Source: Bugula neritina
Taxonomy: Eukaryota; Animalia; Bryozoa
Length of the DNA: 64,000 bases
Assembly: GCA_964035545.1 (NCBI GenBank)
Contig: OZ037768.1
Coordinates: 23,345,319 to 23,409,318, forward strand
Direction: 5' to 3'
Shown: one piece after another, positions 2,931-38,661 of the stretch
Layout: every line of letters starts with the position of its first letter
Numbering within the stretch: the first letter of the stretch is position 1
Translations under genes and position numbers: made by a program
The notes under the pieces: generated by a model
What the model saw: only the letters and a program-made list of their open reading frames with translations
The model's database searches: none
Told to the model about the DNA's origin: nothing

Positions 2931-3196
2931 GTGTGAAGCATTTCCAACAAACAGCTGGTTTCAGTATCAAAGTCCGATACAGTTTTTGATATTTGTTTAA
3001 AGAAGACAGACATCTTCTCCTCTGCAGCAACTAGTGTATTTGTATCTGTGAGATGTCTAATCAGTTCATCCAAGCTCACCACCTCATGTGCTAAACCTGT
3101 ATAGTTATACAGTTATATTGAGAACAATGAGTCTAGTACTCTTTCACTTTGGTATATTTACTATAGGTACTAGTATAGCAAGTTACTATAACAACT

Positions 3197-4224
<1,028 letters not shown>

Positions 4225-15200: not shown

Positions 15201-16436
15201 ACTGATTCCTACGTACAAAGCAGAAAAACACGCATCCTACAATATCAAGTGATAGTATACACTCTTGATGGTCAGCAGGTGACCAGCTGGACTCGCAGAG
15301 ATGAAAGTGAGTCACAAAACAAACTCATGATCATTGATGATCAGATTCTTATTCCTGATAGAAGTAACACAAGGATCACAGTCTACTCTCTTGTTGGGGA
15401 GGAAGTAAAGCATATTCCTTGCTCTCTGCTAAGTCAAAACTCCACAGGTGCTATGTGTGCAGCAGACAGCCACTGTGTAGTAGTTTCTGATTCCTCTCAA
15501 ATATTTAAACTAGACCTGACAACAGAGAAAGTCATCTGGACATGCAAGGAGGTGACTGAACCACAAGGTGTGACCTGCTATAGAAGTAAATACATTCTTG
15601 TGACCAAAGGAGACAGTACAACTACTATTTGTATACTGGATGTGAAGACAGGTTAGTAAACAGAAGTCATAGCAGTTTTTACTGAGCACTGCTATTATTT
15701 TACAGTCTGTCACTTGTACTCTGTGTTTTGACTGCCCAGCTTCATAACGTATTTTTATATTTCTGGTGTTTTTAGCCTTTCCTTCACTTGAAGCTTAACA
15801 TAAATGCTTTGAATTATTATGGTTTCATAACACATATGCCTTTTTATAAGAGCTGTCAGTAGATGTCTCAACAGAATTTATTCTAACGCCTAATTGCTTT
15901 CAGTATCTTGAGTTATTTGAGAACTTTAAAAGAAGTTACAAGGCTTATAACTTATAATATGTTGTGTATAATTAAACTAACTATACTGGTTTTAAATGAA
16001 ACTTCAAAGATTTATACACAGCATCATAGCAACATGGAGCTAAAATGAAAGTGTCTGCAAGGATGTAAAGCTAATGTTTGCAGTGCTCACATATCCTCAA
16101 TTTCAAGCCAACAGGCCAACTATCATACAGCTCCATGTTGTACCTATAAAAAAAATGTTTTGTGACTAAGCTCTAACACTTGGATTTACTCAATTACTGT
16201 ATTATATCACCAGACTATTTAAATTGTTTATGTTTATTGAGAATTATTACATTAGCTTTGTTGTTACAGCATCTTCCATGTGTCTGTCTGCAACATATCT
16301 GATTACATCAATTTCTGTTGTAGGCAAACTCTTGTCTGAGATATCCAGTATATATTTTCCTAGAATGTTGTTTAGAGACATAAAAAAACTGCCTATGCAC
16401 AACATACTTTGCATCTGTTTAGTATCTCGTAATTAG
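6214..16436 (+). CDS. TRIM-like gene copy B (RING-Bbox-Bbox-coiled coil-NHL-like propeller); last coding exon interrupted, so C-terminally altered or pseudogenised
   Basis: Exons 6214-6374, 11960-12116, 12234-12417, 13164-13345, 13883-14053, 14662-14770, 14914-15651 and 16324-16345, all GT-AG with consistent phase. Exon 8 reads into transposon sequence to a stop at 16436. The remainder of exon 8 is at 36859-36991. Confidence 0.85.
6483..6835 (+). repeat. 5' LTR
   Basis: Direct repeat of 11486-11838; one substitution seen (GGAGACTT vs GGAGGCTT). Confidence 0.96.
6837..6854 (+). promoter_or_regulatory. Primer-binding site complementary to the tRNA-Leu 3' end
   Basis: TGGTGGCAGCGGTGGGAT, 1 nt after the LTR; reverse complement ATCCCACCGCTGCCACCA matches the conserved metazoan tRNA-Leu(AAG/UAG) 3' end as I recall it. 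Confidence 0.85.
6871..7821 (+). CDS. gag: Gag (intact, 316 aa from the first ATG) with CCHC zinc knuckle
   Basis: KAPTFTGEEAVEQFIQEF capsid-like start; CWGCGRPGHFQRNC knuckle; uninterrupted ORF immediately after the PBS. Confidence 0.9.
   Translation: MAEDGTELPIPLNEGERDNVDIPVEPVVLEEEVRIPREHGEDRYRLKAPTFTGEEAVEQFIQEFQDVMEIAQWPPRVALLKLRMALTDKAKPYGAGPDIDGIFASLRARFGISPIDARARLQRLRRDPHTSLQEHAATVYPLAQIAFCDLPPVHRERYTYDAFVQSINDLGLHHQFQARGVTTVEDALAVAEAYLMATHMHRNRVASRQVTTEHTTAHTEPNAEPSAVANVNQMSLASKVAQMTDMLDKLVATLAPPSQVDTAREPCGPQVQSPGMGHNFCWGCGRPGHFQRNCPQLQQGLNYHGPQMFPPLAGRL
7770..7835 (+). promoter_or_regulatory. Putative -1 ribosomal frameshift signal (G-TTA-AAC plus stem-loop or pseudoknot)
   Basis: Heptamer 7770-7776 is in the gag frame and the protease ORF is in the -1 frame. 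Perfect 10-bp stem ACGGCCCGCA (7781-7790) / TGCGGGCCGT (7806-7815). Loop CCTCT can pair with AGAGG at 7831-7835. Confidence 0.7.
7770..10114 (+). pseudogene. pol: Reduced pol: protease, spacer, integrase zinc-binding region and Pro-rich tail; RT, RNase H and integrase DDE core absent
   Basis: FLLDSGCTTNLLS protease motif; frameshift in the G-run at 8264-8267; TGA at 8414-8416. ORF 8450-10114 has THEKTHGG...YWPNM...CKVC but no YxDD, RNase H or DDE motifs, unlike the related element at 42700-46600. Confidence 0.85.
10542..11183 (+). CDS. Accessory ORF3 of the LTR element: tandem C2H2 and C2HC zinc fingers, Pro-rich linker, leucine-zipper-like basic C-terminus
   Basis: CQVC-x12-H-x3-H then CPC-x12-H-x3-C; heptads LANVEER LVRLQAE FTQLAPD LLDTTTG LYQLKDS VGRLKRR L. 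An upstream in-frame ATG at 10470 is separated by TAG at 10530-10532; candidate splice acceptor TTTCAG ending at 10416. Confidence 0.72.
   Translation: MTERRIEEAWEPSGPHRTCQVCFEECPSHRSLRLHVDAHFLLHFCPCGFHDVYPYPVTVHKLSCFAGENHTVDEDSFPQYLDAIKPVIKKAITLAALASGFQVLLLSARHKSPMVQGPSPTPVNPSNTPELEGTTIPPLTEPTTTPPRRSQLANVEERLVRLQAEFTQLAPDLLDTTTGLYQLKDSVGRLKRRLRARQARHRARSLQESESTQ
11475..11485 (+). promoter_or_regulatory. Polypurine tract
   Basis: GGGGGGGGCGG immediately before the 3' LTR. Confidence 0.75.
11486..11838 (+). repeat. 3' LTR
   Basis: Direct repeat of 6483-6835, followed by TSD GTAT. Confidence 0.96.
12480..13071. mobile_element. MITE with 9-bp TSD (Mutator-like) in intron 3 of copy B
   Basis: TSD TGAGTAGAT at 12471-12479 and 13072-13080; imperfect TIRs GGTTTCATCCCAAATAG... 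/ ...CTATTTGGGATGACAC with subterminal CCCAGTTAGACGC repeats; absent from the same intron in C and D. Confidence 0.8.
14165..14421. mobile_element. Small inverted-repeat element with GGTAAAAATGGCAC-type subterminal repeats and an AACCCT-rich core
   Basis: Left GGTAAAATTGGCACCGGTAAAAATGACAC is inverted relative to right GTGCCATTATTACCTGTGCCATTTTTAC; related fragments near 5760 and 38210. Boundaries approximate. Confidence 0.55.
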
Positions 16437-18699
16437 ACATAAAAAAATCAAAGCCAATTATAAGGCAAAAGACCATAATACTGTACTATCATTGGATAGT
16501 TCTTCATCAAATAACAGGTAGTTGCCAGTGGTGGATATGAACCCCTCCTAGATGTTTCTCGTACTTCTTCCTCAAAAAACATTTTCATTAAGCCAAAAAG
16601 AAATAACAATACACCTTTTTAGTTGACACTTTATAATTTCTGACTGATATTTCACCTTATTTCCAATTATAATTAACTTTTAACCGGCACTTTTCTTTGT
16701 AGTAATTCCTACCCTTTAGACTGTGTACTTTGAAATGAGTCTGTTTTACTCGTTACATAAAGTATAGTTGCACTGGCTACAGGTTGACACAAAAGCAAGC
16801 CTATCTTGATAAAATCATGCGCAAATGTAGAAACTACCGAGGAGTTTGTTCCTCATAATTAGAAATTGACAAATTATTTTTAATCCGTTTAAAAGCATCT
16901 GGTTAGGGAAGCATATGCCGTGTTCAATTTCTTATTCTAGCATTAACAATAACAGAATGCAATAATTATAAGTTTATGAAAGTAATTTGTTTTCTTTCTA
17001 AATACAAATATAATATTTTAGTATAATATATTGTAAATTTATAAGGCTTGCATTAGGAATAACGCAGCTAAAACATCATTTTCCTTAAAGCCTTAAAAAT
17101 ATATAAGTATAACATAATACACTATGCCAATAAACTTATTAAAGTACCAAGCAAGCTTAGCTAGTTTAAGAAAAATTACACTAGGTAAATTACCATTATT
17201 TATAGAATGCTTGCTGATATTAGCTTTTGATGTAATTAAAGTAAATTATTATTTATCTTTCTAGCTAAGGATTTCTTGCCGTAAGTTTTGCTTTTATGCA
17301 TGGAGAAATGTCGTAACAAACGAGTTAAATTTTTATAGCACATAAAAATGTAATCTATAAGTCGAAGATATTTAAACTTAGCCATTAACTCATTTTAATT
17401 AGAAATGTAGCCTAAATCTAATACAATACAAAATATATACCAGTATATATAATATATTTTTACCATGCTGTTAATTACAGTATTTGTAAGACAAATTTTA
17501 TGCTCATTAATTAAATGCAACAAATATTTATAAAATACTAATAATGTTGAATAAATAAATTCAATAATTCCTTTTCTATTTAAATGGCTGCATAATTTCT
17601 TGCAAGGTTGTATAAAGGAGTTGTGGCCCACAACTTATTATGTGTTCAATTGCCACATATGTCTTAGGAAGAAGAAAACTCCCCAAAAATTCTTAGTTTG
17701 AAAATTCTAGTATAATTAAAATCACTTAATATATGTCTTTGAAATGCATTTTGCCACTCTACAAAGTTGCAGGAACAAATATTGCATGAAGTAATAAATG
17801 ATTTATGAAGTAATTAACAAACCAATGTAAAAACTGTTGTTGTATATAGAACACAACATATTGATTGTCTTCAATTTCCACATCAAATCTATATATTCAA
17901 TTATATCTAACCAATGCTAATAAACTAAACATGCATGCATACAAATATTTGCATCATATGCACGTAATATTAGCTAATTAGCAACTATAGCATTTTTTTC
18001 ATTATCTTTATTGCTTGCATATGTCTAAGTATTATTAAAATAAGGTTTTTATTTGCAACTTTGCACCACAAATTACATAAAATCTAAAAACTTGAGTTGT
18101 GACATACGGCTACCTATACACAAATAGACCTTCATAAAACTCTCAATGATTTTATTCAACTCATGTATGCAAAAGTTTTGCTTTAAAACAATTCTTCTAA
18201 ACCATCCTAGAGCAGGGAATTATTACAAAAACAGCTTCTCATATATAATCTTTCCCCAGATTAATTTTTTTCCCTGTATTTAAACTAACTTAGCAAGTGA
18301 AGATTGTGATATCACTCAGGTAATCACATATATATTATTCATAGCTGTAATACTTTAGCAATGAATAGATCATGTTTAATTTCCACTCTACCTAGCAGTT
18401 TTTCAGAATTATAGAGCTATGTATATCGTGAAATTGAAATAGCCTAATAGTTTTACATGTGTTTATAGCTAGACAAATTAACTTAAAAAGCTTGCAATAA
18501 TTAGATGATATTTGCATTCTTTTGAAGGTTATGGTGAAGCTACTGCAAAACTGGCCATTAGTTTAGCATAATATGCAATGCCACGCAAAAGCATGCCAAA
18601 CAAGCAATGTTTATTTACCTTACCAGTGCAATTTTATCACCTTAAACACAAAAGCAAGTATAAAATACACATCCATATTAGATTAACTGTCAAGTTAAA

Positions 18700-20150
18700 A
18701 AAAGACAACATATATTCATGAGCTGGTTCTGTTTGCACAAGTACAATTTAGACCAGCTTATTATTTAGATTGCCACAAAAATATGACGTAAAATATGTCT
18801 TTAATCATTATTTTGATATTCACTGGTTGAAGATATTTTTTATATCCTAATATGTAAATATTGTACATAAATCTTAAAAATTAACTAGGTGAATAAGGAA
18901 AACTGCTAATTTTATGAAACTGTTATGTTAATAAAGACAATGGCCATCAACAAATCCCACCAGACCACAAACTAATTGTAAATACTAAAGCAATTATATA
19001 GTGCTATGTGTTGATCTAGCCTAGTCAATACACCACAAATATGTATTATGACATACCACATTTTAAGTACTGGGTTACCACTTATTCTAATGGGTATTTG
19101 TTTAAACTGTTATATACAGCTTTTTGCACTACCAATATACAAGCCAGTTGTTATTCTGTCACTTTTTATCTACATCTCTTTTTAATGCCAGTTACTTGTT
19201 AGCTTCAGTACAAACAGCTAAACATTCTACTCTACAGCCAATCTTACTGTTAACTCTTGTTTAACAATATTACAAGAATCTAAAAATTTGAGTGTGTTTT
19301 AAGTATAATATTCTATCATTATAACTTTTAAATGAAACAATAATATGATAAATGCATTATAACTTTCTGAAAAGTTTGTTTGCAAAGTATATGTTTTTGG
19401 AAAATAGTTTTACAACATTTGCTAGGAGCATTATATTTATTCCTATCTAAAATAATTTTGTTTGAACTGCTATGTTTGTAATCATGTAATCAGAAGTAAA
19501 GCATCAGTAAAATGAGTATAAGTAGAAGCTTGACAGCTACATTAGGCATTGCTACATAGTACATAAATATATGGCCGTATTAAATACTTAGCTGCATTCA
19601 CAGATAAATGCATGGCTTGGAACTACAATACCATGAATACATTATTTATTTAGCTAGGTAACTATACAATTATGCCAAAGTGAAAAGCCTTTGGTTATTA
19701 ATGCCTGAAATGTCTAACAATCTACTTGAGAGACCACCTTGTTGTTACAGAGTGAATGAGTTATTTGTTTGGCATTTGGATGATGGCACAAAGAAAGGCT
19801 ATTTGGTTTGTTACTTGAGACTAGTAGCAAACCGCTACAGTCATAGCATCTTAGGAGATTTTGCATCACTTGCTAGAATTGTACATTATTTTAATGTAGC
19901 TATTGAAATTAATATCTCACTGAAAACACAGTATTGCAAAATCTTAAGCTGTACATAATTATATTATGCATCTAAAAGTACTTCTGCTATTCGACTATCT
20001 CAGGTTTATTTTAAACTAGCACTGCCAAAGTGCCTTGACTCTATTACAGTGTTTACTAGCTAATTTTGTTCTTCTCAATAGTGAAATAGATCTATTGCAA
20101 GAAATTAATGACTAGATATAACAATAATGATTTTTAGGCAAGACTTTCGC
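18700..20150 (-). pseudogene. Heavily decayed hAT transposase remnant
   Basis: Minus-strand fragments in the expected order: FRCII..YVQL (CxxH region, about 19940-19975), LIHSVTTRWS (TRWNS motif, 19732-19760), LTRLDQH (LDPR-like, about 19010-19030), KLYLCK...AHEYMLS (SERxFS-like, about 18705-18760). Many stops and frameshifts; only the TRWS match is strong. Confidence 0.55.
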
Positions 20151-21395
20151 ATCTATATTGCTCATCTGCTAGCTTGAAATACCCCTCTCCTTGGACTAAT
20201 CTCAGGCTTTTCATTGTTGTTTAAACAGTTTTTAAACTCCTATTTCAATAAATCATTACCAACACTGCCCGCATGTATTAATATTCATTAGTGCCATCAA
20301 TGCACTGTGGAGACAGCACCTGATGTTCTGTATATTACATTATAGTACAGAGATACTAAATCCAAAACATCTAAAATAATTGATGCTTCTACCAGATTTT
20401 TAGCACACCTATAATATGTATTCCTGTAGTAAATATTAATAAGATGTTTTAACTGATAGTTTTTATGCCATTATAATAGTTTGATACTATAACTACAACT
20501 TGAAACTCTTTAACCAGCACATTGGTTAGTAATATTGCTTCTTGATATTTAATTGCTGGTTCACAAACTATCAATAATAGGGATGCATATCAAAACTTGA
20601 CTGCATTCATAATATGATTTTAATGCTAGGTAATGACTAAGCATGTCTGGCTGATATGAGGTGACTATTTTGTACACTGTTTAACAACATCAGCTTTTTG
20701 GGTTCATTTAAAGCATCTGCAAATCTGTATTATACATAATTACTGTTAGGGCCAATTAATTAAATTGTTAACCCTGAAATGCTTTTTACACTGTATACTA
20801 AGTAGTAAAAGATATGTATATATATATAAACTGATTGTAATTTATACATAACATTGTACATTTAAAAAAAATCACAAAATACATAATTTATTAGCTAAAT
20901 TTCAAGGCGTTTTGTAGGTAGTGGGTTAATGTCAATAAAGTAGAATCCGGGAAGTTGAGTAGCTTTATTCAAGAGGAAGGCTCTCCAACAGTTCTACCAA
21001 AGCCTAAATAACATGTATAAAATAAAGGTTATATGCACAATTTTTTTTCCAAAACAGCCTGCAACTGTTTTGCTATTGCATATGCCCTATGCCATTCATC
21101 AAGTAGAACAATTTTAACCAGGATATCTAGAAAAGTTGACACAAGGGCTTTATAAACTATGTAACAGTAAAACTGTGAGTAGAAATTAATTGACACTAAT
21201 GAATAATGCTTTAGGTGCTGGCAACAACCATAAAAGAAAAGTTATATAACAAACAAATAGAAAAAGCACTAAACAAATCAACAGCATTATATACAATTGG
21301 GGCACATACATGAAAACAGCAGCTAGTGTCATTTTCTTAAGACAGCACTATTTTAGGTATAAATTTAAGAAGTATTAGAAAATTCAGAAATTTAC

Positions 21396-21812
21396 TGCAA
21401 TTGGTTCATTTTATTTAAGTTAGTACATACTGAAGATCTCAAGTTTTTGCTAATGAACATGAGTTTTGGCCCAAAACTAAAAAAATATCAATAAATACAC
21501 CTAAATAATCAAGGCTCTTTTTAATTTTCTTTGATTTCCTATGCTTTTTTCTAATTACAGCAACTTCTGACTGGGGATCGCCACGGTTAGTTTGTAACAG
21601 TAGGCAATCCAAATGAAATGAATAAATAGGAAAAAAACATGAGAAATCATGCAAAATTAAGAAGAACCTTGATTATTTAGGTGTATTTCTTGATGTCTCA
21701 CTAATTTTAAGCAAAAAGCATTGTTCATTAGCAGCTAAAATGTAAAAATGGCTAAAAACTGCAGATTTCCAGTGTGTACTAAATTAAATAAAAGGACTCA
21801 ATCACCTTTGCA
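21396..21812. mobile_element. Foldback/MITE-like inverted repeat nested in the giant element
   Basis: AAATACACCTAAATAATCAAGG (about 21493) is inverted as CCTTGATTATTTAGGTGTATTT (about 21667), with further matching arms outward. Ends approximate. Confidence 0.65.
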
Positions 21813-23865
21813 ACATAATTCAATAATTGCATGGTCAAGCAGAATAAACTACAATTAACAGCAACAACAGTGTAATAGTTGCGTAGAAAAGTTGTACTGC
21901 AAAAAACTAAAAGAATGCAAAATCTATAAATGTGTGCTACCAAGTAAATGCTGAACAGACATCATGAAATAGTGTACGAAATACAAACTATTAAACTTAC
22001 CTGTTGATCTAATGCAGCCAAAACCTTAAGCTTAGAGTAGTGGAATGGTGCTGTTCGATGTTGATATGCTACAAGTAGCTAAGATGACTCAAATTCTTGC
22101 CTTTAGGAGTAAGAGGCCTCAGCTCAGTTTCAACAAAACTTCCAATAATCTCAACGGATGCGCTCAATTAGGAGCCACAACAAAGCACACCCATGTCATT
22201 TTAGTAAACTCTAAAAAATGAACGGAAATAAAACTGTTAGAGAGTAAACAGAGAAACATATAGTGATGGGGGAAAAACCTGTCAGCAAAGGTTATATACA
22301 CTCATAGCCATAACACGAAGAAAAAGATAATGAATAACAACCTATTCAAGATGACACAAGAAACCAAACAAATTTCTTTGACTAAAAAATATAATTAAAT
22401 ACTATATTACTTAGCAAAAAATATTTGTTTTGAACAACGTATTATTGGGAAGAATTGCCAGTGTCTTAAATTTTGAGATTAAAGTTTCTGCCTTATAGCG
22501 GAAATAGAGAGGCAATCAATAGTGTACAAAACATGTTTTCAGTCATTGGCTGTTGACTAAATTGACAAAGTTAAAGAAAGCTTCCATATCATTATTTATT
22601 TTGTTCTCAAGTGTGTGGTTACAGTTTCATGAGTCAGAAATATAATTATTTGAGATATGAAATCAAATGTAGTCAAAAGAGTGTCATACAATTTAAAATG
22701 TAGTAATAGAGCTTTGACAATAATTTCTTCTGCTAAGTAAAACAGGTACCATTATGTGCTACTTATCTTTTAGAGATGAACATCAAGGATGTTGAAAACA
22801 AAATAGTTGTAAATTACAGCAAATACCTTTCTACTTACCTAACCAGAGAAAATAAGTTTTCAACCTTGCATGCACTCAGCTGGTTTTCAATGTTTGGATC
22901 AGTGACATCTTTATAACTGATAGCAGCATTATGTGATAGCTTTAGGAATTGTTACCTTAAATCTAAATTATATAGAACAAGAAGTGCAAAAATATGGCAT
23001 TAGTACTCATTGCACAATACAAACTTGCTAGAGTAGCTAATCTAGCATCACATTAATTTAAGAAAGACAAAATTTTATTACTGTTCACAAATGATGAATA
23101 TTAAAATTTGAATAATTAGACAAATTAACAATGATATTGATGTTACTTCAAACATTACTAATGGTAAACACCAAAATACTAATAGGAATAGTCATGTTAA
23201 CATCAATTAGAAAAGTAAAGATAATTTGAAAATGAGACAGTTTATAGGTCTAACTCTTATAGTTGACAAGCAATTACAGGGCAGTCATATTGATGTAGGC
23301 TACCCTCAAAATGTAGCACTTTAAAAATATTAAAAAGACAGCACATATAAGAACATAATCTTAAAAATAGGCATATGTGACACCTATATTTTGATTAACA
23401 AAGAAATCTTCTTTACTTTATTAATCTAGCTCATATAATGGTATTCTGTCTTAGTATGTCATTTTAATACTTGAAATCTAATCAGCTACAGAAAAGTACT
23501 TCAATTCAAAGGCCTTCATAATTATTCTTTAGTTTGCTATTTAAATAGACAGTAAGGTTGATGAATAAAATAAAAGTTAGTAAAGTAAAAACTAAATAAA
23601 TTGAGAATAATATCTCCACTCTAAGGTTATAATCCTTATAAATTAACATTTTAATACTCCTGTTATCCTTAGGTATAGTTGTTAGCAATTTAACTATGAG
23701 CTCGAAGCCAAATGTCAGTATCAGCATCCCCATTACATTGACTAAGACTGACTTTATAACCCTCAAGCTGTGGCACTCAATTTCTATAAGTAGTAACTAA
23801 TAACAAATATAAAATTATTTATTTGCTACTGATAGTGATAATAATAATAATTAAAAATAATAATA

Positions 23866-26824
23866 TGATCCATTAAAATAGAACTAATAAAGCCAACGAC
23901 GTTAATGGTATGTCTAACTAAACATGGCATGTCTCGTCTGGCAGTGGATATGTGGAGGGCCAGGCAACCTACGGCCGTCAACCCGTTAATGGCACAACTA
24001 GAAGAAGATACTCAAGAGAAGACAACAAAGTTGTCATGAAATGCTGCTTCAAAAGTACACCCAAATTGAGAGGTTATAGAAAAACAATGTATGAGCTCTG
24101 TAGACCCGGATCAAAGAATTATTTAAAAAGAATGTGCAAACGCTGGAAAACAGAGGAGAGTTTAACATCAGCGAATAGAGACTAGCGGATTAAGCAAGAA
24201 CTATAAAGAAACACAAGCATTTTATGGAAGAAGAACTCCATAAGATTGAAGAAGGAACCTTGCAAGAACTAGGCACATCAATTGGTGAAGAAGATAATGA
24301 AGAGCTAAATTTGCAAATAGAGGATGTTATAGTACAACATGAGATAGCATATAAATCAGCCATGAGAATTTTCAGAGTACCTAGTTCAGAGGTAGAAAAA
24401 GTGTTAGTAGAAAAATTATAAATGAGCATAACAAACTATCTAATGATCGACCAACACTAAGAGCCCTTAGGCACATTGAGAGGGTCAAATTACTACAGGC
24501 AGTAAAACAGATTAATGATGTGCTAAACTGTGTTGAGATTATTAATACCATTGAGCTTAATAACACCACCATGGCTTGTGCGAAAAATAGTAACAGAACA
24601 AGTGTGTAACAAAAAGGAAAAAGAAAAACTGACAATGTACAAGTATGGAAAATACGACTGCAGAAGAAATAAAAAGAAATTAGATCAGACTTAAGTAAAA
24701 TAGCAGAGTGAAAAAGTAGAGCTTACAATGATTCATTGAGAAGAATGGTTGAAGAAAAATATAGGATAAAGAACAAAGAGTGTGGTGTAGTGATTGAAAA
24801 ACTGAAGCAAAACCTGAGAGCTGTAAGCCAGAAGATAAACAGATATACAGAATGAGTTGATCAATATAATCAGAACACAATGTTTACAATGATAAGCGCT
24901 TTTATCAAGAATTACGAGGAAATGAATACGTACATCTAAAGAGGCACCTGACAAGGAAATCAAAAGCATTCTGATAAAATATATGGGGTCAGCCAACTAA
25001 AAATAATACCAATGCAGAATGACTAAATAAAGTTAGCAACAAATTGGAGCATATGTAAAGACAAGGAAATTAGATCTTAGAAACGATGCAAACAACTGGA
25101 ATAGCAATTAATGTCATAAGGTTGATAAGAAAAAGCATGAAACCTGGAAAACACAACTGAAATACCTGGAAGAAAAGATAGGAGAAATAAAGATCAAACT
25201 AAGAATTTTCCAAGGAGACTCTTTATCTCTATCCCTTTTCTCCAACTACCGATTCGCATGACAGAAGCGGCTCAATGATGCAAATTTCGACGAGACAGAA
25301 AACAAACCATCTCCTATATGTGGATGACCTGAAGGTAAATAGGAAATCAAAGTGGGAACTGGAAGCTTTGGTAAACACTGCCGGGATCTTCACAAGGAAT
25401 ATAGAAATGAAATTTGGATTAAAAAATGTGCCACACTGGTTATGAGAAAGGGAAAGAAAATTAAGGACACAGAAATCAGTTTGCCTGATGAACAGGTAAT
25501 CAAAGATCTGGGTGAGAAGCCGTATAAATATCTAGGAGTTCTTGAGATTGATGGAATACAAATATATGAAATGAAAAATAAGATCAAGGAGTACTACAAA
25601 CAAATAAGAAAAGTTCTGGATTCAAAACTGAATGGTGAGAACACAATCAAAGCAATAAACACGTGGGCAGTAACAGCAGTGCATTACACAGCTAGAATAC
25701 TTGACTGAACTGTTTCATGAGCTAAAAAATATGGACTGAAAGACAAGGAAGCTAATGACAACAAACCGTGCACCCTATCCGAGAGCAGATGTAGGCAGGC
25801 TGTATTTTAGCAGAAGGGAAGGCGGTAGAAGAATGTTGTCAACTGAAAAATGCATAAAGATTGAAAACTGCAGCATGTCAGACTACATAAATATAACATA
25901 GACTGATAGAAACACCACACTGAATACCTTCCTAAAAGACAGAACAGCGGTAGAACTAAATAATGATAAAGTGATAGAAAGAACTGATGAGTGTAAAGAA
26001 AAGCTTCACGTGGTCAATACATCAAAATGGTGGAAGACATGAAAGCATTTTCCTGGAACTGGTTGAAGTATGGTTGGCTGAAAAAGAAAACAGAAGGACT
26101 GCTGACAGCTGCGCAAAATCAACTATTCATTACTAGAAATTATAAAGTGGCTATGATGAGAGAACAGGGTAGCAAGAAGTGTGGAATGTGTAACGCAAGA
26201 GACAAAACTTCGATGCACGTATTGAGTGAGTTTGAGAAGGTAGCAGAAGGAGAATATAAGAAAAAACACAACCTTTTGGCATTGATAATTTCAATAGTAG
26301 TTGTGTGAACTTCGTGGGTTTCAGAAAAGTAAGAATTGGTACGGCCATCAAGCAGAATAAGTACTGGAAAATGATAATGTGAAAACCTTGTAAGATTTTA
26401 ACATACACACTGACGTAGTCATCAAAGTTAGGAGACCCGATATATTAGTAGTTGACAAGCATAATGCTGAAACAACGATAATTGATATCACAGTCCCTGT
26501 TAACTACAGAGTAAAAGAAAAAAATTCGAAAAGTTAGGAAAATATCAGAATTTAGCACTAGAATAAACCCGCCTTTGAAAAACATCAAAAAAGTCATCCC
26601 GTTGTAACTGGAGCCTTTGGAGCTTTATACAAGATTGTAGACTGGCTGACACTACTTGGAGTAGCTGAAAACAAATGCTCATTAATTCAGCAGACACCCT
26701 TACTAGGATCAGGATAAGCTCACATCCTGAGGAAAGTTCTAGCCATTTCAGCCTAGTATAACTAGGCCAATGGTAAAAGGTTACACCAGCTAAAAAACTA
26801 CGGTCAATCAACAACAATAATAAT
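23866..26824 (+). mobile_element. Degenerate non-LTR retrotransposon with RT and restriction-like endonuclease (R4/Dong-like clade)
   Basis: Fragments RRYSREDNKVVMKC..S.PKLRGYRK, IFQGDSLS, HLLYVDDLK, YKYLGVLE, KAINTWAV, LKKKTEGLLTAAQ, CGMC...H, RPDILVVDK, IIDITVP; flanked by (TAA)n runs at both ends; many stops. Confidence 0.85.
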
Positions 26825-27864
26825 ATACAACTATATTAGTGCAGTTGGTTCTATTATTAGATTAGCATATCGATTATGACTTTTCGATTGCCACCCTGAT
26901 ACTATGAGTAAAATGTACAAGCATACGTGAAAGTATAGATATGATCATAAGTATAAAAATAGGTATAAGTATAAATATAAATATAGGTACAAGTATAAAA
27001 CGAATGATTATATTATTAATAATATTAGTCAGTGATACCTATAACCGTAATGGTTTTTAGACTTACAGTTATCATTAACATTAGCTGAGTAATATGATTA
27101 GTTAAAATAATGGTATTCATTATTATATCATAGTCTCTAAAGAGCAACAGCAAGTGTAATTGGGATATTCATATTAAATTTCATATTCACATAGTGCAAT
27201 GTTTATGTTATGAACTAATTTATTCCTTCAACATTTAACTATAAATATGATTAACACTAACTTTGACCAGCAGTATTACTAAAAGAAGCGTATTACAAAT
27301 ATAAGATAATAAAATTCTAGTAGTAGGACTAATAGTATTACTAGGTCCAGTATTATTCTTGTTATCTTATTCATTATTCATGAGTTATCAAATTTAAAAT
27401 TACTACTCATTAGCATCAGCATATAAAAAGTAAGATCATTAGGAATAATTATCATGAGGTATGATCTATGATTTGCATTATCCATATATAGTTTAATATC
27501 AATATGATATATTATTATTGCTGATAGTCCATGTTATAGTTAAATTTATACTTATCTTTACAGTTACCTATAGTAGCACTTATTAGTTATTTGTGGTAGC
27601 CAAACTAATGTTTAATATTAATAAATTAAACTGAGTATCATAAAAGTGTTACTAAGAATTTTAATTATAATCGTAATGGTGATCATATTACTTTATTATA
27701 ATTATTATATTTTATCATTAATGCTAAACTGAGTTAATGTATATACTTTGAGTTTTACTATTACTCATTATATTTACACTTATAGTAAAACTAAATATGT
27801 AAAAGTTATACTTATACTATTATTATTCGTATTTCATTAGACTTACATCTAAGATCGCAGTCCT

Positions 27865-28022
27865 ATTACTACTACCACTGATACTAGTACTACAACTAGT
27901 ACTAGTACTGCTACTACTACTAGTACTAGTACTACTACTACTACTACTACTAATAGTACTGTTACTACTACTACTACTACTACTAGTACTACTACTAGGT
28001 CTACTACTGTACCAGTACAACT
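27865..28022. repeat. (TAC)n/(ACTAGT)n microsatellite
   Basis: Directly visible; source of the poly-Ser ORF. Confidence 0.9.
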
Positions 28023-31000
28023 ACAAACTTTGAAAATAACTGCAAGAAAGGTATGACTTACTCTTTTTCTTAGTCTTACTGTGACTCTCAGTCGTAATGT
28101 AAAATAAAATTGTGAACTGTAAAGTTAAACCCAAGGCTGAAATTTATTTAATTAAATTTAGAAAATCTGAATCATTGGCTCAATCTTTGAGTTTGACTAT
28201 TACTATTATTATTAGTGTTACGATTGTGATTATCATTGGCATTATGCCATTATCATTATGATTGTAATTGTGGTAATTCTAACATTAATTATAATCATAA
28301 ATTAAAAGGTAATGATTAATGATAATTATTTTCATTTTGTAATCATAATGATAATCATAATGATGTAAATTTTGATGTAAAACCAAAATACTAAAACTAA
28401 AAGTAAAAGTTATAAAATTAAATGATAAAATATTATAATGATAATCATAATTATTATATTTATTATATTATTATTGAATATATTATTTCATTAGAAAATA
28501 GGTTGCAGCTTAGCATGATTAAAATTCAGTAAAAATTAGTTTACCAACAGCAAACATGCATGCGTCTTGTCAACATTCAATTCGTAGTGCCATAGCGAAG
28601 CCAGATTACTGGTAGTACGACTACTAGAACTACTACTACTAGTGATGGATCCTTGGCGATTTTAGCTGTGAGTGACCTTCACCTCACATTCTCGTCATGT
28701 GCGCGGCATTAGACTAAGTAGAGAGTATGAAGCACTGAGCTGGAAAAGAAAGAATATATTTTAATTATAGGTAATACTAATAGTAATATAATTTATGGTA
28801 ATATATAGGTAATATTATTGAGTTCATTGGTATGGAGTATAGACCTATCACTGATAGTATCAGTATCAACTACCACTTACGTACTACTTCAACTTATAAC
28901 TTACCTTCAACTCAAACTCAAACTGAAACTGCTTGGAATCATTTGTCTTTGATCATATTGGCATTGTCATTGTGATTGTAATAACTATTAATATTTTTAG
29001 TTCAACATCAATGCCGAACATATTGTAATAACTAATAAGATAATCATAAGGTTGATATATTTTGCTAATACTAATACTAATAGTTATAGTAATAGTTATA
29101 GTAATTCAGTGTCACTCTCACTCTGGTGGAGTGAGACTCAGACTTACTCTTAGAGTTAGAGACAGAGTGAGTCCGAGTAAGTCTGAGTGTTGGTAATAGT
29201 AATAGTCATATAAATTTAAATTATATTTACTTATTTCTAGCAATCACAATGGCAATAGTTATAGTAACTTTCACTTACTCTTAAATCATTGAACCTGAAC
29301 TAAAAGTAAAATTAAGCATTATGATTATGATTATCATTATGATTATACCTATGATTTTATTATGTTTAAATTAAAAATCAATATCATGATAATATCATAG
29401 TGATAGACATATTATTGATAAATGATAATATAAAAGTAATTTGATAAATTATACATTGATTTTGAATTAAGGTGATACTGATACTAGACCGGTACTGAAA
29501 GTGATAGTAATACTAATAGTAATAGTAATAGTCATATAAATTTAAGTTATATTTACTCATTACCGGCAATCACAATGGCAATAGTAACTTAAACTGTAAC
29601 AGTAATGGTATGGGTATGTTTGAAATTGTCACTATCAGTATTGCTATGAATCAAAATATAATGCTATCATACCAATAATTTAAAATAATATTACAAAGCT
29701 TCAGTAGCAACTTTTACTTGTACCAGTTTGGAATTTTGAATTATGCATATTCTTAGTTAAAGTCTTCAAGTTTATTGTCAAAATGAACTTGAAATTAAAG
29801 ACTTAGTAGTAAAAATTAAACTAAGACTGACTGTAAGTGACTAAGATTAAAAATAAGTAATTTTAAATATCGATTTAGTATTTTTCTTACTCTTTGTCTT
29901 AAAATTGACTTTTATTTTGCACCTACTCCTGGTCAATGATTCTTTTTTCTATTTATATTACTATTGCTATTAGTATAATTGACTTAAATTTAATAATATA
30001 TATGATTATATCTTTATAAATGTGATATTTGATTTTATGAATAGTAATTCGAAAACTCTTTGGTATTATTTATTTTTGATCATTGTAGTTATTATCATTA
30101 TATTTGTATAATAATTATGATTATCAAATTCAATATCGATATTTGTATTATGGTATGGATATCTGCCTCCATCCCGTGTTCTGTTTTGCAGTGCCTTTTT
30201 ACATTCACGTCTAGGTTCACATTGCGATGGTCATACTGATAGCACTTGGGGACAGTGATGAGCATAATGATTATCACTAATATTAAGATTATCGTTATTA
30301 GGATTTAGAATAATTTAATAAACAAGCAACTTAAAACAAATGTTTTTACTAATATACATATTAATTACTAATATAAATATACTACTATGAATATTATAAT
30401 TATTATACTTTACAATTCAAAGTAAGATAATCATAATACGAACTGGTAAAACTAAATATAAAGTAAATGTAATAATACTAATAGTAGTTATCCATTCCCC
30501 TTTGGTTTCACATACTAATAATTGGAAACCTCTGTCCTAATATTATTTCTATTAATATTGCTCAAAGTTTGATCCCTATTTAATTTTATAGTTCACTCAC
30601 CAGCTACATAATTTTATTAAAATACATGTGGTATTGGTTATAGTACTAGTGAAACTTGAAGTTGAATAGCATGCTTATTACTCACTGCTCTTTGCTTACA
30701 TTATTAGGGTTACTCTTTAGTCTTAGAGATACCCTAACATAAACTTGAAAGCTGGAGGTAGTACTAGTCTAGTGCTGTGTTAATCCTACACTGTTGACTT
30801 ATCAACACTGTGACTATAATTATGACTCCTAAGTCAAAGTCATTTTCATATAGTAGTAATCACTATGACAGACTGAAAGTCAGGAAGACTAAATATAATG
30901 GTAAAGTGTGTAAGAATAAATCATACTTAATCAATTACTTTTAGTTTTGTTACCAGTGTTGGGTCAACTTTCAGAATAAAGAATAAATATAATTATAAAG

Positions 31001-32566
31001 ATAAATGGATAAAAATTCCAATCATGGTTTAATGTGCCTATTTTAAGCTGTTAATTTAATTACTATAATATAAGTGCTCAAAATACAACTTTTGATTTTC
31101 ATAATTATGTTTTAATTTAATACAGATACCATAGTATCATATACAGTAGAATCAGTTGTATCTTATTTAATAATGAAGTAACTTATTGGAGCTTTCACAG
31201 TTATTAATTATTTACTTGTTAGTCTTTGAACTGGGACAATGTTTGAAACTTGAAGTAGAATGAAGTTTGATTTCAGTTACCGCAATGGTATCTGCAGTCA
31301 CAATAGGAATACGCATATAACTATGTTTATATTTGTGAAAAATATATAGTCAAAACTAGATAAGGTAATAGTAATTATAATTGGTTTCACTTTTAATATA
31401 TTCCTATAAACTGGAAAATAGACAGAAGCATTTAATCATGAAAGTAAACCTAGTGGAAGTAAATCAATTCACTAAGTATAGTAAAATATTTACTATTCAG
31501 TAAGTTTATTTACTTTAGTTAATTGTACTTGATTATTTCTGTCGGTTTTTCAGTTGATTTTTCTACCTTTTGCTATAGCATATCAAACTACCACAAAGTC
31601 ATGCTTCCGTATTACAATTATAAACATAGTGTTACTGTGTAATGTTATAGTAATGTAATAGTAATATTTGGATCATTGTAAGTATTTCTGTTGTTGTACT
31701 GATTGATAAATATTTTTTAGCTTGCATGGATATTTGCAACGATCAAGATGTCATTTGAACCTGGACTGGAATAAAGATGGCAAATCGAGAAGCTAGCTAC
31801 AATTATTCTGCAGAAAGAAACTTGGTAAGCAAAAATAAGCTGCAGCATTAAGCAGTAAGCAATATGACGATGAACTGTGCTTGATTTTGATTGACCTTAA
31901 AATATCTGGTCACCTTTCACCAACGTGGTCCTGCGCGGGTGGCGGGTGACCTTAAAATGTCTGTTGCACGTAAAATAAATTTTGTGACAGTCAAAAGTAT
32001 GCTGATCTTTTCCGTATTTCAGTGCATCGGTGTCTTAGCTTAAGAGCTGAACCCAACAATTATGATCTAAAGCTGTTTTTTACTAGAAAGTGATTTTACT
32101 GTCTTTCTGATTATTCTTGGTTTTTCAGCTTGATGAATTGAATAAATGGATTTGATTTCGGGTATTATGTAATGGATGAAAGAATTTTTTCTTAAATTTG
32201 TACTGAGCAATTTTTGCTATTGCTATGATGTTTAGTGATAAAATTGCACCCTTAATAACCCTGAAAACTTTCATTATTAGCATTTGTTCATGTTCATTTT
32301 TAGGAAATTAAAATGAAGACACAACTCACCGATGCTATCTCACTGTGCCTGCATGCAGTTTATCTAAAAAGGTACTGCTATTAGCTGGCTCTTGCCCAAT
32401 ACCTGGTTGTCTCTGTAACTATTTTTTGCTCGCAGATGAGTTTTTTGAACTTGACATTTTATTGATTTTGAAAGTTATAGTGAGCTTTGAACTTGCTAGC
32501 ATCGTTTTTAAAGAATTGCTGCAGTTTTTATCAACATTTTTTAAGTCAATGGTGTTAGTTTGGAAG

Positions 32567-32868
32567 CTCTCTCACTCCTCTCTCTGTCTCTTTCTCCCAC
32601 ACCTTCCACTCAACTTCTCTCTCTTTCTCTCCCTCTCTCCCACCCTCCCTCTCTCCCACCCTCCCTCTCTCCCACCCTCTGTCTCTCCCACCTTCTCTCT
32701 CTCCCACTCTTCGTCTCTCCCACCTTCTCTCTCTCCTAACCTTTCTCTCTTCCCTTTTCCACTATTTCTCTGACTCTCTCCCTTTCTCTCTTCTACCCCA
32801 TCTCTCTTCCATCCTCTCTCCTAACCTTTCTCTCCCACCCCCCCCCTCTCCCACTCTCTTTCTCTCTC
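32567..32868. repeat. CT-rich polypyrimidine low-complexity tract
   Basis: Directly visible CTCTCCCACC-type repeats. Confidence 0.9.
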
Positions 32869-35800
32869 TAGTTTGCATGGCTTTACCCAATTTTGGTTTA
32901 TTTTTTTATTTTGTTTCAGAGTATCCAAAAGGAAAGCTAAAATTTATTTAATATATATTATACCAACTTGAGCTTTACATATAATATCAAATAAATGCTG
33001 TGTTTTGTTAAAACAATGTTTGCAACTTTGTAGTATATTCAAATTCATAATTTATTTGTAGAGTCATACAACAAGACACTACTCTGACACACTCACAAGT
33101 TGCCACTGATCTAGCAGTATAGATGATTGTTTTCTCCACTGGCTATGCTGTCACGCTTTACTGTTGTGGTGTTTGAAACAAACCAATTCTTTGCCTACGC
33201 AGACTAGGGTGAGAAAAAAAGTGAGAAATGAAAGCTGTTTTTAATACCAACTACACTTAGTTTTTATTGAATGAAAAACAAAGTGAAATCATTAGTTATC
33301 CGTTAAATGACTAAATCATTGTTTATAAAGATGAAACACAAATAATCTTATAATATTATGCTAATGAAATTTGGCTTTCAAATAGCTTTTTTCTGTATAT
33401 TTGTTGAGGAAGTTTATCTTCAACAAAACTTCGTAGCTGTTGAATATGTGGAGAGTATTTTATATTGCATAAATTTATAGAGTAAAAGGTTCTCATCAAA
33501 CTTTTACAACTTAGCTCATCGACGGTTTAAAAGTGTGAGTCACCCTTCACACTAGAGTTTTATAAAGTTTTAATGAATGTGCAGTATTTTATAAAATATT
33601 GTGTGTCTCGTAAATTTAGCTATTTCTACCTTTTCAGTGAGATTGGAGTAAACACACCTCAAAATTCACATCTGGTATCACATTGATTTATCGCAAGTCA
33701 AAGTACACCTACTAACTCTTCCTTCCTTAATACCTGCTTGCTTTTGCACTTCTACTCATTTCATATACCTAACATTTCTCTTGCAGATGAATTACATCTT
33801 TTAAGTTGTAAAAGCCTTAAATAGCATGAAATTAATGAGGTTTAAACCGTGGCCACACTAACTATTGATGCGTTTATTGATGGGTTAAATTACACGAAAA
33901 TATTGTCTCTTTCTTTTTAGTTTCACCTAAAGTATTACATACTATTGATGGAGGCTTTGCTGAAGTTTTTGGGTGATGATTTGTCAATAATTTTCCAGAG
34001 AAGATGATGCCACGGTGGCTGGCATCATTATACAGTTTCCAAATTTCTTTCGGCTTTGCTCTAGTGAAAATGTTGGAAAACAATCAACAAAAAGGTTTGT
34101 ACCATAAACGAAGTTATTGTGTGCGTGTTGTCAAAGCATAAAGTGTGCTGGAAATTTTTAGGTTTCTGTTGAGATGCGTTTTTGCTTTTCCTGCATGAAA
34201 AAAGTTCCAGTTTCAGTTAATATCACTAGCGGAGTGCCCACCTATATTTTAAATCATATTGATGGATAAGTTCTTTTTGTAATATTAAAAGTATAACTTG
34301 CTTAATTGCTATTCAATGCCCTTTGAAGTTTCCAACTGTAATTAATTAGTTGATTTGGCAGCATAGTATCGATGATTGATGAAGGCAGCCGATATAATTA
34401 TAAGCATAAATATCTATATCTACATGAAGATGTCATTCCCAATGATTGTTATTCTGAAATCAGCTGATTAAGTTATCACAAACTAAACATTTTGACCAGC
34501 GGCTTGCAATGCAATTCGGTGAAATTTCAGACCTAGATAAATTGAATTTCTTACTGAAAATCGTGAAGGTATTAAAGTTTAAAGTGAAAGTTTAAAGGGT
34601 CATCTCTCTGCGAATTCTAATAGCATGGTGCCAATTAGACTTGAAAAAATTTCAAGGCACTATAAAGCACTAAGCCCATTCTTACAAGTAGTTTCAAAGT
34701 GCACTGGAATTTCAGTTTACTTGTCATTGTATAGAATCCTGATCTACACTATATAGCATTCACTATTGCCTGCTTCTTCTAAGCATCTATAATGTATTAA
34801 CTACAGTTTGCTTTGAGAAGTGAATTTCTACTTGGTATTTTTTCCTTGTCGTTCCGTTGTTTGCCAGTAGTCTTAATTTAATGGATTTTCCCTTTTCAAA
34901 AGTGGTTGTGACAATCAAAACACATCATGCAGCCTGCAACTACACAATCAGCCAGTAATTTCTTCCATTAAAGTAGCTCTTCTGGTTACTCTTGCTCACC
35001 TAAAAGCCTGAGCCTCATTCAAATTGCAATTTTTTAGAGTTGTTAGTTTTTCATGCAGTCTTTCATTTTTTTTTTTGTTAGGCACAAAATTAGTATTCAC
35101 TAGACTTAATCTTTCATCTGCATGTATGCCTATTGTTTGTTCATTAAAGAAAAACCTCTGCTGAATATTGAACTAATAATGAAAATAAATTCCCTAAACT
35201 AAAAGTAGCAGTGTGATTTTGGTATTACAATTAGTTGTTAGCATAGAGTCAAGTTATTGACAGGAATTTTCAAATTGAAATGAATGAATTTCATTGTAAG
35301 TCAGCAAGATTTAGTCTAAGTAAACATAGCATTACATCGTGTTTTATTTAGCATTTGCAGAAGGCAACATATATTTTAAGGATTATTGTAAACTTAAATG
35401 TAATTTTAAGTACTTTCCATGTTTGTTATTGTAGATGGTCTTGTTCTTTAGGATGGATGTGACAACTCCTTGTGTCAAGCTTAACTGATTGACTACTGAA
35501 TCCCAATCATATGTTTTGCCAAAAAATGTGAAAATGGAGTGCATGTCTACTTTATTTGAGAAAATATTAAAAATACTTTTGAAACTTCATCTAGCCAAAC
35601 AATACAACAGTTTCATTTTATTAAAAAATATCATTTGCACAAAAATGTATTATGTAATCGAACAATTTCTAGAAAAAAAAGTGCTTTCCTCCAGTTTTGC
35701 TAATGAACTACATTTTTCATTATATGCTTGTCTTTATAATTTTATTAATTGTTTTTTCTGGTGAGTCAATTAAAGTCAATTCAACCTAGAAAAGTCTGAA

Positions 35801-36245
35801 TTTCAGACTTAATTTCAAGCTAGAATATTCACATTTTTAGGTCTGCGTTTGCAAACATTGTTGTGTTACTTTACTTTTATATTTTTTGAAATAAATATCT
35901 TTTTAGCTTGTGCCTATTCATGATTAGAATAGTATAATAATATTTAACTTTTCTTCAATTTCAATAGATGAAAATGTTGATCAGTTGGAGTATTCAGTTT
36001 AGCTGAATTTTACTTGCTTCTGCGAAAACAATCTTTTGGAGTTGTCTGCCCTCTCTTTAGGTAATTTTTTGACCTATGGTCAACGCAATAATTATAACTT
36101 TTTAAAGATGCTTGTGAACCTAACAATATAGCATAACTATCAAACCACATTATTCAATATCTGCATAAAATTTAGCCGATAAGCTGCCACCCAATGAGCT
36201 TGAAAAGATATTAGAATTCTAGCTCAGTGCTGCCATCAATGTAGA

Positions 36246-36339
36246 TATTTATAATGATATAAAGCCAAAACTCATTATTTATAATGATATAAAGCCAAAA
36301 CTCATTATTTATAATGATATAAAGCCAAAACTCATTATT
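36246..36339. repeat. Perfect 30-bp tandem repeat, 3 copies
   Basis: TATTTATAATGATATAAAGCCAAAACTCAT x3, no spacers. Confidence 0.95.
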
Positions 36340-36858
36340 GCATGAAATTATCTAACCATTCCTGACAAAGAATCGAGATAATAACTCCAAAGTTGGTCAG
36401 TTGAAACCACAGCAATAATACTTTAATCGTTATAATTGTCAGGTTTAATTTTATACCAAGCCCCAATAAGTACATATAACTATGACAACACAGCCTAAGC
36501 ACCTCCAATGCAAGAAATTTAGTATTGTGGTGCTGCAAATCCTCCAGTTACAAATGAGTAGAGCTTTCATGATTATTGGTCTACCATAATGTTTATTTAG
36601 TTTTAAGGACTAGCATAAATGCTATTATATGCGGGAGGTATTTGAAAAGCTTCCAACTCCATCTTCAACTACGGGCTATTATAATTATGCCGATAAACGA
36701 GATACTACACTCAGACTGCCCTGTTATAGTACTATGATTGGCTACTGCAAAATTTTTGCCGATAGACAACATTTAATTATGATGTAATGTATCTCGTATT
36801 GGTACATAAGTGTTATGTCTGAGGACGAGATACTGTGAAATTATGCCCTGGAGATATC

Positions 36859-36991
36859 AGATGATGAGGATAGATTGTTTTCAGCACGCATATCTTTCTC
36901 AGTGTATGACCTAACTGTGTCTGGAAGAACCCTAATTGTACCCAAATTGGGATCTCACGACAATAACGTGCTGTTTTACCAGCTGAACTAA
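36859..36991 (+). pseudogene. Displaced 3' part of copy B exon 8
   Basis: Encodes DDEDRLFSARISFSVYDLTVSGRTLIVPKLGSHDNNVLFYQLN-stop, homologous to the C-termini of C and D; directly follows the right TSD. Confidence 0.9.
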
Positions 36992-38661
36992 AAGGTATAA
37001 AAAGGTTTTAAAGATTGAGACTCATTATAGTGAGTAAACTTGTCGAGTTCCGGAAACATTCTCCACACACTTTCATTTCACATTTTAATGCCTAGTTTCG
37101 ATCATAGTATTTTATTGTCTGCCTTCTACCATGTGCTAAAAACAGGCTTTTGCAACAAGTTTAGTAATAAGAGTTTTAAATACCTTCAAGTTGTAATAAC
37201 ATTTCACTATATAGTTCACCTGTTCTGTTCATCTAATATAATAAAGATAAGTGTTGAGTATCAGTATTTGATAGTTTACCAGCTAACAACGTGTATGTAG
37301 TGTTCACTCACTCAGCGTACATATTATTTATTGTTTTATATTGTAGATGCATCTGGGAGTTGTCCCACCAGACTGAGTTCCAATCATCAGGTAATGCTGG
37401 ATTTAGGGACATCACTCTAACGTACCGTACTGAAAATCAAAGTTCCTCAACAAGATACACCAGACTAAGTAGTGTAACACACACAGTATATCAACTGAGG
37501 AATATATTTGTGTTTCCTGTAGAATACACACAGACTATTTAACAAACACTTTACATCTGTTAATATAAGATATATAGTTATATATTTATATATCTTGTCA
37601 CACTACTCTCCTTTACTATAGTATATACTTACACTGTAATAATATTCACCTATAGGATATAACTATATATAGTTATATCCTACAGTAGCATATATAGCTA
37701 TTCACCGAGATAGTATATATTATGTGATGTATATATTATAGTGGGATAACATTTATATAGACAGTGTTTTACAAAGCTGTTTTATGTTGTTTTGTTTTCA
37801 TTAAATATTTGCTTCGAATCATCCTTTCTAACTTTGAGTGAGATTTTAAATATATTATATCTAGCTTGTTACACGTACACACACACATATATAACACTTG
37901 AAGAATCAATATTTGCAAAATCTAAGGCTATGATATTTCCAGATCGTAGGCTGTGAACAGTCTTAGTAATCTTGTGCGGTAAAATACTTGCAAACAGCTA
38001 ATAACTTGATGAAATCATTATTGCGCAATTCTTTGCATCTGTTATATGTGACTTTAAGTGATCAATAAAACTTTTTGGAAAACATACTTTGTAATAAATT
38101 TTCCCTTTCTAATAATTACTATTGAACTTTAGTACCTAACTATAGGTTTAGAAGAGCTTTTTAAAGTATGTTGTTTTTATTCTGGCTTCACACAACCTAA
38201 GGGTTTCATGGTAAAAATGGCACAATTGGGAACCTAAGAGAGAGTCAATATAGCAATAATTGTATGAACAAGCTGCTGCTAAGGCAATCAGACTGAGACA
38301 TGGCCATAATTTTAGCCAATGTTTACTTTATAAGTGTACATATGCGTATTGCCTACCAGTCAGCTATTCATAGTTTTTACAGAAGCACAGTGTGTTAAGT
38401 TCATCAGGCTGTTGCTTAGCAACTTTCAAAGAGTCACAACTCACTATAGACGTAACTAGTTTGCACCTCGGCTATTCAAGTTTATTTTTATATTTAAAAA
38501 TACAATAGTTAGTCCTAATGCGTAATTGTTCAAGGATAACAATAAACATGAATAGCAATGATTATAATATCATATGACTAGTTTGTAATATATAATCTGT
38601 CACAGGTGTATAAAATATTAATTACAAAACACGTCTCAATCCCTTAACATTTATATCAAAC

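Follow-up and report, generated by a model that had tools for sequence, protein, structure and literature searches.

A 20.5-kb insert in a coding exon of Bugula neritina: a probable member of a young and abundant family of giant non-autonomous DNA transposons

How did 20.5 kb of DNA come to split a coding exon of the bryozoan Bugula neritina, did it arrive in one piece, and which enzyme moved it? The questions are raised by a 64,000-nucleotide stretch of chromosome 4 (C4:23,345,319–23,409,318 in the 216-Mb assembly), which we call the window; plain positions below are positions in this stretch. Paralogous genes lie in tandem in the window, and the last coding exon of one of them, copy B, is interrupted by an insert. 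A first-pass annotation of the window had described this insert as a cargo-laden, non-autonomous hAT-type transposon, which moved as a single unit after its contents had decayed. We find that the insert very probably belongs to a young family of class II cut-and-paste elements that are non-autonomous, numerous and giant (modal 20.4 kb); for this family, the hAT assignment is plausible but unproven.

The insert occupies positions 16346–36850 on the plus strand (C4:23,361,664–23,382,168), exactly 20,505 bp, with the ends CAG...CTG. At the left junction, the exon reads ...CTTGTCT GAGATATC (16338–16345) and passes into CAGTATATATTTTCC... from 16346. At the right junction, ...AAATTATGCCCTG runs up to 36850, the insert's last letters being CCCTG, and is followed by GAGATATC again (36851–36858) and then by AGATGATGAGG.... 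With GAGATATC on both sides, the 8-bp target-site duplication (TSD) is perfect. The exons of two paralogs (50764–50844 and 58419–58499) run uninterrupted through a single GAGATATC directly into ...AGATRATGAGGAGAG..., and thus serve as empty sites within the window. The 5′ half of the split exon (16270–16345, plus strand), which we aligned to these paralog exons, follows an acceptor ...ttgttacag, carries an open frame ...ASSMCLSATYLITSISVVGKLLSEI and ends in the target 8-mer, and the 3′ half (36859–36991, plus strand) extends up to a TAA stop codon. When the halves are joined by a local script, they form one open frame that ends in ...NNVLFYQLN and the stop at 36989–36991, like the paralogs, and the remaining exons of copy B are all still open. 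The junctions, the two empty sites and the joined frame confirm what had been noticed at first pass, namely a split of exon 8 with both halves still open.

The two ends of the insert resemble each other in inverted orientation. The terminal 22 nt, CAGTATATATTTTCCTAGAATG on the left (16346–16367, plus strand) and the reverse complement CAGGGCATAATTTCACAGTATC on the right (36829–36850, minus strand), form imperfect terminal inverted repeats (TIRs) with 14 of 22 inverted matches, a value reached by 0.1% of random 22-mer pairs taken from the element. The 64-kb window contains the 8-nt core GTATCTCG/CGAGATAC at four sites, none of them more than 160 bp from an element end, and three of these cores (36698, 36789 and 36826) lie in the right subterminal region (36698–36834). 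A 22-nt subterminal motif, AGTATCTCGTnnTnAGACATAA, appears once near each end in inverted orientation: as AGTATCTCGTAATTAGACATAA at 16421–16442 on the plus strand, a candidate transposase-binding site, and at 36813–36834 on the minus strand.

Searching the genome with the 400-bp termini revealed that each has at least 40 scored copies at 99–100% identity. A 25-nt pattern for each end, matched exactly or nearly so, finds 84 left ends and 80 right ends genome-wide, compared with zero for a reversed control pattern; the end sequences of the family are CAGTATATATTTTCC and GGCATAATTTCAC. The 22-nt subterminal motif, allowing up to two mismatches, has 174 genomic matches against 164 family ends and six control matches, and is essentially confined to the family. 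Pairing of the ends by contig, strand and order yields 74 pairs with a mode of approximately 20.4 kb (20.3–20.6 kb), and approximately 32 of the pairs span 20.2–20.8 kb. The smallest pair spans 11.0 kb and the largest 52 kb, and no short partner element (no pair below 11 kb) is present among the 74. Longer pairs include one of 29,887 bp at C8:2,685,287–2,715,173 and one of 36 kb at C8:1,263,143–1,299,473. In total, the family makes up approximately 1.7 Mb, or approximately 0.8% of the 216-Mb genome.

In order to compare whole copies, we fetched six from chromosomes 1, 2, 5, 6, 7 and 8, which gives seven copies together with that in the window. The six are colinear with the window copy from the first to the last base, with an identity of 98.0–98.7% when gaps are included, except for a 2.6-kb insert (C1), a 3.2-kb insert (C5) and a 0.64-kb deletion (C6). 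Perfect and mutually different 8-bp TSDs surround six of the seven: GAGATATC, TAATTTGT, ATAAAATC, ATAATCCC, CGAAAATC and AAAATTAT. The flanks are unique at 11 of 12 left-end loci, and 22 distinct target 8-mers show 82–95% A/T at positions 2–6. Pairwise substitution divergence among the seven copies is 0.67–1.26%, and 513 of the 571 variable sites are singletons, which indicates a recent, star-like burst. Discrete ends, TSDs and many copies in unrelated flanks are the features by which class II elements are recognized, and by these the roughly 80 nearly identical copies represent a very young class II cut-and-paste family. The movement of the whole 20.5 kb as one unit, as proposed at first pass, is confirmed by 74 paired ends, colinear copies of approximately 99% identity and differing TSDs.

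What does such a long element carry? Its G+C content is approximately 30% in an AT-rich window, and its longest interior open reading frames (ORFs), up to 153 aa, are of low complexity. A 121-aa piece (25343–25705) has 1,652 relatives in a library of 1.8 billion proteins, and the full-length relatives carry RVT_1 and zf-RVT. With one relative of 1,122 aa (P0002), tblastn traces the decayed ORF of a long interspersed nuclear element (LINE), a retrotransposon without long terminal repeats (LTRs), over 23931–26747 on the plus strand (E=7e-69), with several frame switches and with residues ~334–558 missing. A sequence search of PDB with this reverse transcriptase (RT) piece gave no match. The identical broken layout, including frameshifts and the internal deletion, is found in all seven copies, and the LINE region varies to the same degree as the remaining element; the LINE was therefore dead in the master copy, and its decay preceded the burst. 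This confirms the earlier view that the contents had decayed before the element moved.

The rest of the interior consists of repeats and anonymous AT-rich DNA. A foldback of nested inverted repeats (21400–21802), similar to a miniature inverted-repeat transposable element, is present in all copies compared. Both the nested LINE and the foldback seen at first pass are real. A (CTA)n-type microsatellite (27863–28008) lies inside a low-complexity AT-rich stretch reaching approximately 30.5 kb, a CT-rich tandem array with a 16-nt unit is located at 32617–32834, and a 30-bp perfect tandem repeat of 3.1 copies at 36246–36339 differs in copy number among family members. The foldback, the microsatellites and the 30-bp repeat are common to the family copies.

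We found no transposase in this interior. Pfam recognized no family in 124 ORF pieces (at least 42 aa) or in the ten most sensible ORFs, a screen that also missed the genuine RT relic and is therefore weak evidence of absence. Genome-wide six-frame domain searches are stronger evidence: none of 14 matches to PF05699 (C-terminal dimerisation domain of hAT transposases), ten to PF18758 (KDZ transposase) and eight to PF12017 (P transposase) lies inside any of the 74 intervals, so that no hAT, KDZ/Zisupton or P domain is detected within the element. Searches for PF14372 gave no match anywhere, control genomes included, and are hence uninformative. Comparing the interior with ten resident hAT and ten KDZ loci by tblastx returned chance-level matches only, blastn against resident hAT and KDZ loci added just three short blocks considered below, the most protein-like ORF (19662–19955) scored like random sequence in a protein atlas, Rfam found no RNA family on the element, and scans of public metagenomes with either terminus gave no match. 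The body is thus non-coding DNA (foldback, microsatellites and anonymous AT-rich sequence) plus a dead LINE, with no working gene. Two descriptions from the first-pass annotation need revision. The decayed internal transposase is not detected by Pfam on ORFs, tblastx or six-frame domain searches, and the word ‘cargo-laden’ is misleading because the body holds no recognisable gene; the description as a giant non-autonomous element stands.

On this basis, we propose that a DDE-type transposase encoded elsewhere would recognize the imperfect 22-bp TIRs (CAG...CTG) together with the subterminal AGTATCTCGT..AGACATAA motifs. The enzyme would excise the whole unit and reinsert it at cuts staggered by 8 bp, with a preference for an A/T-rich core. 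For the family to rise to approximately 80 copies, repair or replication would have to restore the donor site. The LINE relic, the foldback, the microsatellites and the AT-rich DNA were all in the master copy, decayed as they are now, before the burst. What we observe is the element's ends and TSDs, the number of copies, their colinearity and common decay, and the exon split; the binding role of the subterminal motifs and the type of the acting enzyme are what we infer. The enzyme would most likely be hAT-like, and less probably of the KDZ/Zisupton or P type.

To a hAT-like enzyme we assign a little less than an even chance. hAT elements have short TIRs starting with YARNG, subterminal repeats, an 8-bp TSD and the target consensus nTnnnnAn. 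The 8-bp TSD and the CAG/CTG ends of the family fit the hAT type, and the right end, CAGGG, agrees with YARNG. The genome contains a resident hAT in three identical copies with different flanks, each with a 563-aa open frame (C1:30462367, C3:28905230 and C5:1593917), which is probably currently active; other hAT families lie at C3:4,214,841, C3:17,496,141, C1:26,548,718 and C3:5,105,155. The right end of the three-copy hAT, ...TGTAATTGACCCCAACCCTG (also ...CCCCAACCCTG), was located where the three copies stop matching, and it has TGTAATTG subterminal repeats.

Several observations, on the other hand, weigh against our interpretation. No partner transposase was found in this genome, and the resident hAT, the sole resident autonomous element whose end was read, shares only CAGGG with the family. 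The left end, CAGTA, misfits YARNG at position 5, and nTnnnnAn is absent: of the 22 sites, 41% have T at position 2 and 27% have A at position 7, approximately the background. The hAT type claimed at first pass fits the TSD and the CAG/CTG ends, but it lacks the target consensus and any hAT relic. The C5 copy (C5:4233651–4257326) has no TSD, with GTATCTTT on the left and AATATACC on the right; it may have arisen by recombination of two copies, or it may mark a rearrangement. The interior could also conceivably retain a coding remnant that is strongly decayed or rich in introns. A TIR-consensus pattern that excludes the family has five genomic matches, approximately the chance number, none of them near a hAT, KDZ or P locus. 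We notice diverged, unpaired variants of the left end at C8:6745505, C9:10388930, C5:501908 and perhaps C3:32198973.

Three superfamilies that make 8-bp TSDs (hAT, KDZ/Zisupton and P-like) are recently active in this genome, and each might supply the enzyme. Movement of the same kind of element by a KDZ/Zisupton-type transposase, with the family as a fully gutted relative of resident KDZ elements, is in our view unlikely. TSDs of 8 bp are made by Zisupton, and Kyakuja elements end in CA..TG and lack real TIRs (PMC12730594); an 8-bp TSD and CA..TG ends therefore do not separate hAT from KDZ. A weak terminal repeat, too, is compatible with KDZ/Zisupton and P elements. PF18758 has ten genomic matches, and because these include four near-identical 451-aa open frames, KDZ/Zisupton elements have been active recently; resident KDZ elements lie around C4:11,721,561, C4:11,728,328, C5:10,985,459 and C8:6,196,648. 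However, no family copy contains a PF18758 match, tblastx against five KDZ loci stays at chance level, and searching for the 22-nt subterminal motif brings out no other family. Similarity to a KDZ-relic family is confined to three short, non-colinear blocks of ~72% identity, one of them in the foldback, which look like common small repeats. A resident P-type (THAP9-like) family as the source of the enzyme is improbable. Eight copies of PF12017, spread over six chromosomes, score exactly or almost alike (59.0 and 58.4 bits), suggesting that a young P-like family is present, and P elements have 8-bp TSDs and CA...TG ends, with which the TSD and ends described here are compatible. Classical P elements carry longer, perfect TIRs, however, and Drosophila P prefers GC-rich targets, whereas the TIRs of this family are short and imperfect, its target core is 82–95% A/T, and no PF12017 match lies inside any copy.

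It is equally necessary to ask whether a second partner is needed at all. The family could be autonomous through an unrecognised or highly intron-rich transposase that the ORF screens missed, a reading we consider very improbable. Zisupton genes can hold 18–31 exons (PMC9297572), the ends are shared by no partner, be it shorter or longer, the family far outnumbers every candidate master, and the Pfam ORF screen overlooked even a true RT relic. Yet the longest ORF, of 153 aa, is of low complexity, the 124 pieces are without a Pfam family, and the most protein-like ORF resembles random sequence; exon-by-exon six-frame searches detect no hAT, KDZ or P domain in approximately 80 copies, and the other transposase genes of this genome are built of long exons, with open frames of 451–563 aa. 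To the idea that a small element in the exon was later inflated by nested insertions, or that the block is an artefact of assembly or segmental duplication, we give next to no credence. Some copies do contain nested insertions, one pair on C7 has identical flanks, and a few family copies appear to be duplications; against this, seven copies from seven chromosomes, whose TSDs differ, are colinear throughout the interior and in the LINE breaks, no copy is below 11 kb, and the flanks are unique at 11 of 12 left-end loci. Later inflation of a small element is excluded by the seven-copy colinearity, the size distribution, the different TSDs and the shared LINE breaks. A small chance goes to an enzyme not yet linked to the family (of a KDZ-type giant element, domesticated, or new), or to a 20-kb body that is kept for working in cis. 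In the latter case, the body might be a heterochromatin, pericentromere or small-RNA-cluster module favouring its own spread or retention, an idea that we raise because the copies concentrate strongly in a small number of megabase-sized domains (C3, where 1.06 Mb contains 12 left ends; the ends of C1, C5 and C7; and the first 6.5 Mb of C6). The remaining probability falls to another type of mobilising enzyme, neither hAT, KDZ nor P and without cryptic autonomy.

Returning to the young, non-autonomous class II family as the preferred reading, we also describe how its copies vary in size and distribution. The C1 copy contains an additional 2,575-bp gene-less TIR element with the ends CACAGTTRGTTTAAGGTCA at window-equivalent positions 17896–17899, and the C5 copy contains a 3,208-bp gene-less TIR element with the ends GGCWCAGTCCASTTTATTTAGTACAAAC and a 4-bp TSD, ATAT, at 33035–33038. 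Neither is in the window copy, and such small secondary inserts explain oversized copies by later insertions. Among the larger copies, several at unrelated loci match two by two almost exactly in length (22,511/22,515; 25,120/25,124; 28,256/28,270; and 32,360/32,376 bp), which hints that enlarged variants have themselves transposed. The copies are strongly clustered, at C3:14.78–15.84 Mb, C6:0.4–6.5 Mb, C1:32.9–35.3 Mb, C5:14.6–17.7 Mb, C7:11.1–15.0 Mb and C8:1.0–8.5 Mb; in the C3 cluster, the number of left ends expected in 1.06 Mb is approximately 0.4, compared with the 12 present. Copies abut head-to-head or tail-to-tail at C8:1193382/1194093, C3:15604588/15604776 and C5:15167556/15167560. 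The pair on C7, C7:14880962 (minus) and C7:12251519 (plus), lies 2.6 Mb apart in opposite orientation and is an inverted segmental duplication or assembly duplicate instead of two separate insertions, because its flanks and its TSD, AAATTATG, are identical.

The interrupted gene itself was scanned with Pfam by single exons, and the exon halves were joined only for the alignment and the frame check. The scans match a RING and two B-boxes and, weakly, a beta-propeller, always under the curated cut-offs yet consistently, and so indicate that the gene is TRIM-like (RING, two B-boxes, coiled coil and beta-propeller). The reading frame continues for 29 codons into the element (ORF 16224–16436), and the insertion thereby swaps the last 44 codons of copy B for a short read-through tail. 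A TRIM-like paralog has in this way been knocked out very recently. Four such paralogs occur in the window, at 513–5300 (inverted), 5425–16345 plus 36859–37630 (copy B), 37880–51750 and 55100–59190, with 60–95% identity across conserved blocks and a shared architecture of RING, B-box, coiled-coil and beta-propeller.

Other insertions are also present in this gene cluster. Copy B holds a GC-rich LTR retrotransposon at 6483–11838, with G+C up to 59%, and its aligned LTRs, the direct repeats 6483–6782 and 11486–11785, are 100% identical; copy B has therefore been hit twice very recently by transposable elements. In paralog copy C, a 7.6-kb stretch of approximately 50% G+C (39920–47530) interrupts the gene between conserved exons, without long internal direct repeats and without similarity to the LTR element of copy B. 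An (AC)n microsatellite of approximately 165 bp runs uninterrupted over 4055–4220.

How does the family compare with known systems? Non-autonomous hATs, such as Ds of Ac and the Tol2 vectors, are alike in the 8-bp TSD, the CAG/CTG ends, the short imperfect TIRs and the subterminal repeats. The right end CAGGG is that of Ac and of the active hAT of this genome, and mobilisation in trans and tolerance of large inserts are alike as well. An A/T-rich target core has also been reported for Tol2. Typical non-autonomous hATs, however, measure a few kb or less, whereas this family measures approximately 20.4 kb, and it has reached approximately 80 copies without a detectable hAT relic, without nTnnnnAn, with the left end CAGTA and with no matching autonomous hAT found in the genome. 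ToxhAT of fungal wheat pathogens reaches 14 kb (PMC12506042), and the family differs from it in carrying no gene. With KDZ/Zisupton elements, the family shares the 8-bp TSD, CA..TG ends, weak TIRs and a very large size, but it has no KDZ domain or relic, and other families lack its subterminal motif.

High-copy non-autonomous DNA transposons are usually short, since longer elements generally transpose less efficiently. That an element of 20.4 kb without a gene has reached approximately 80 copies, at approximately 1% divergence, therefore implies a natural system that moves at least 20 kb efficiently in an animal genome, and the identity of its enzyme is of interest for large-cargo gene delivery and for the size limits of eukaryotic transposons. 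Large class II elements include Pack-MULEs and the En/Spm elements of the red alga Chondrus crispus, of 16–20 kb, in a review of giant eukaryotic transposons that does not mention hAT (PMC6431247). These resemble the present family in having large DNA between transposon ends and in cut-and-paste movement in trans. Pack-MULEs (Mutator) and En/Spm (CACTA), however, have other TSDs and ends and usually carry gene fragments, whereas the present family contains nothing but non-coding DNA and a dead LINE. Large class II elements mobilised in trans are thus known, and what is unusual is a gene-less element of 20.4 kb at approximately 80 copies.

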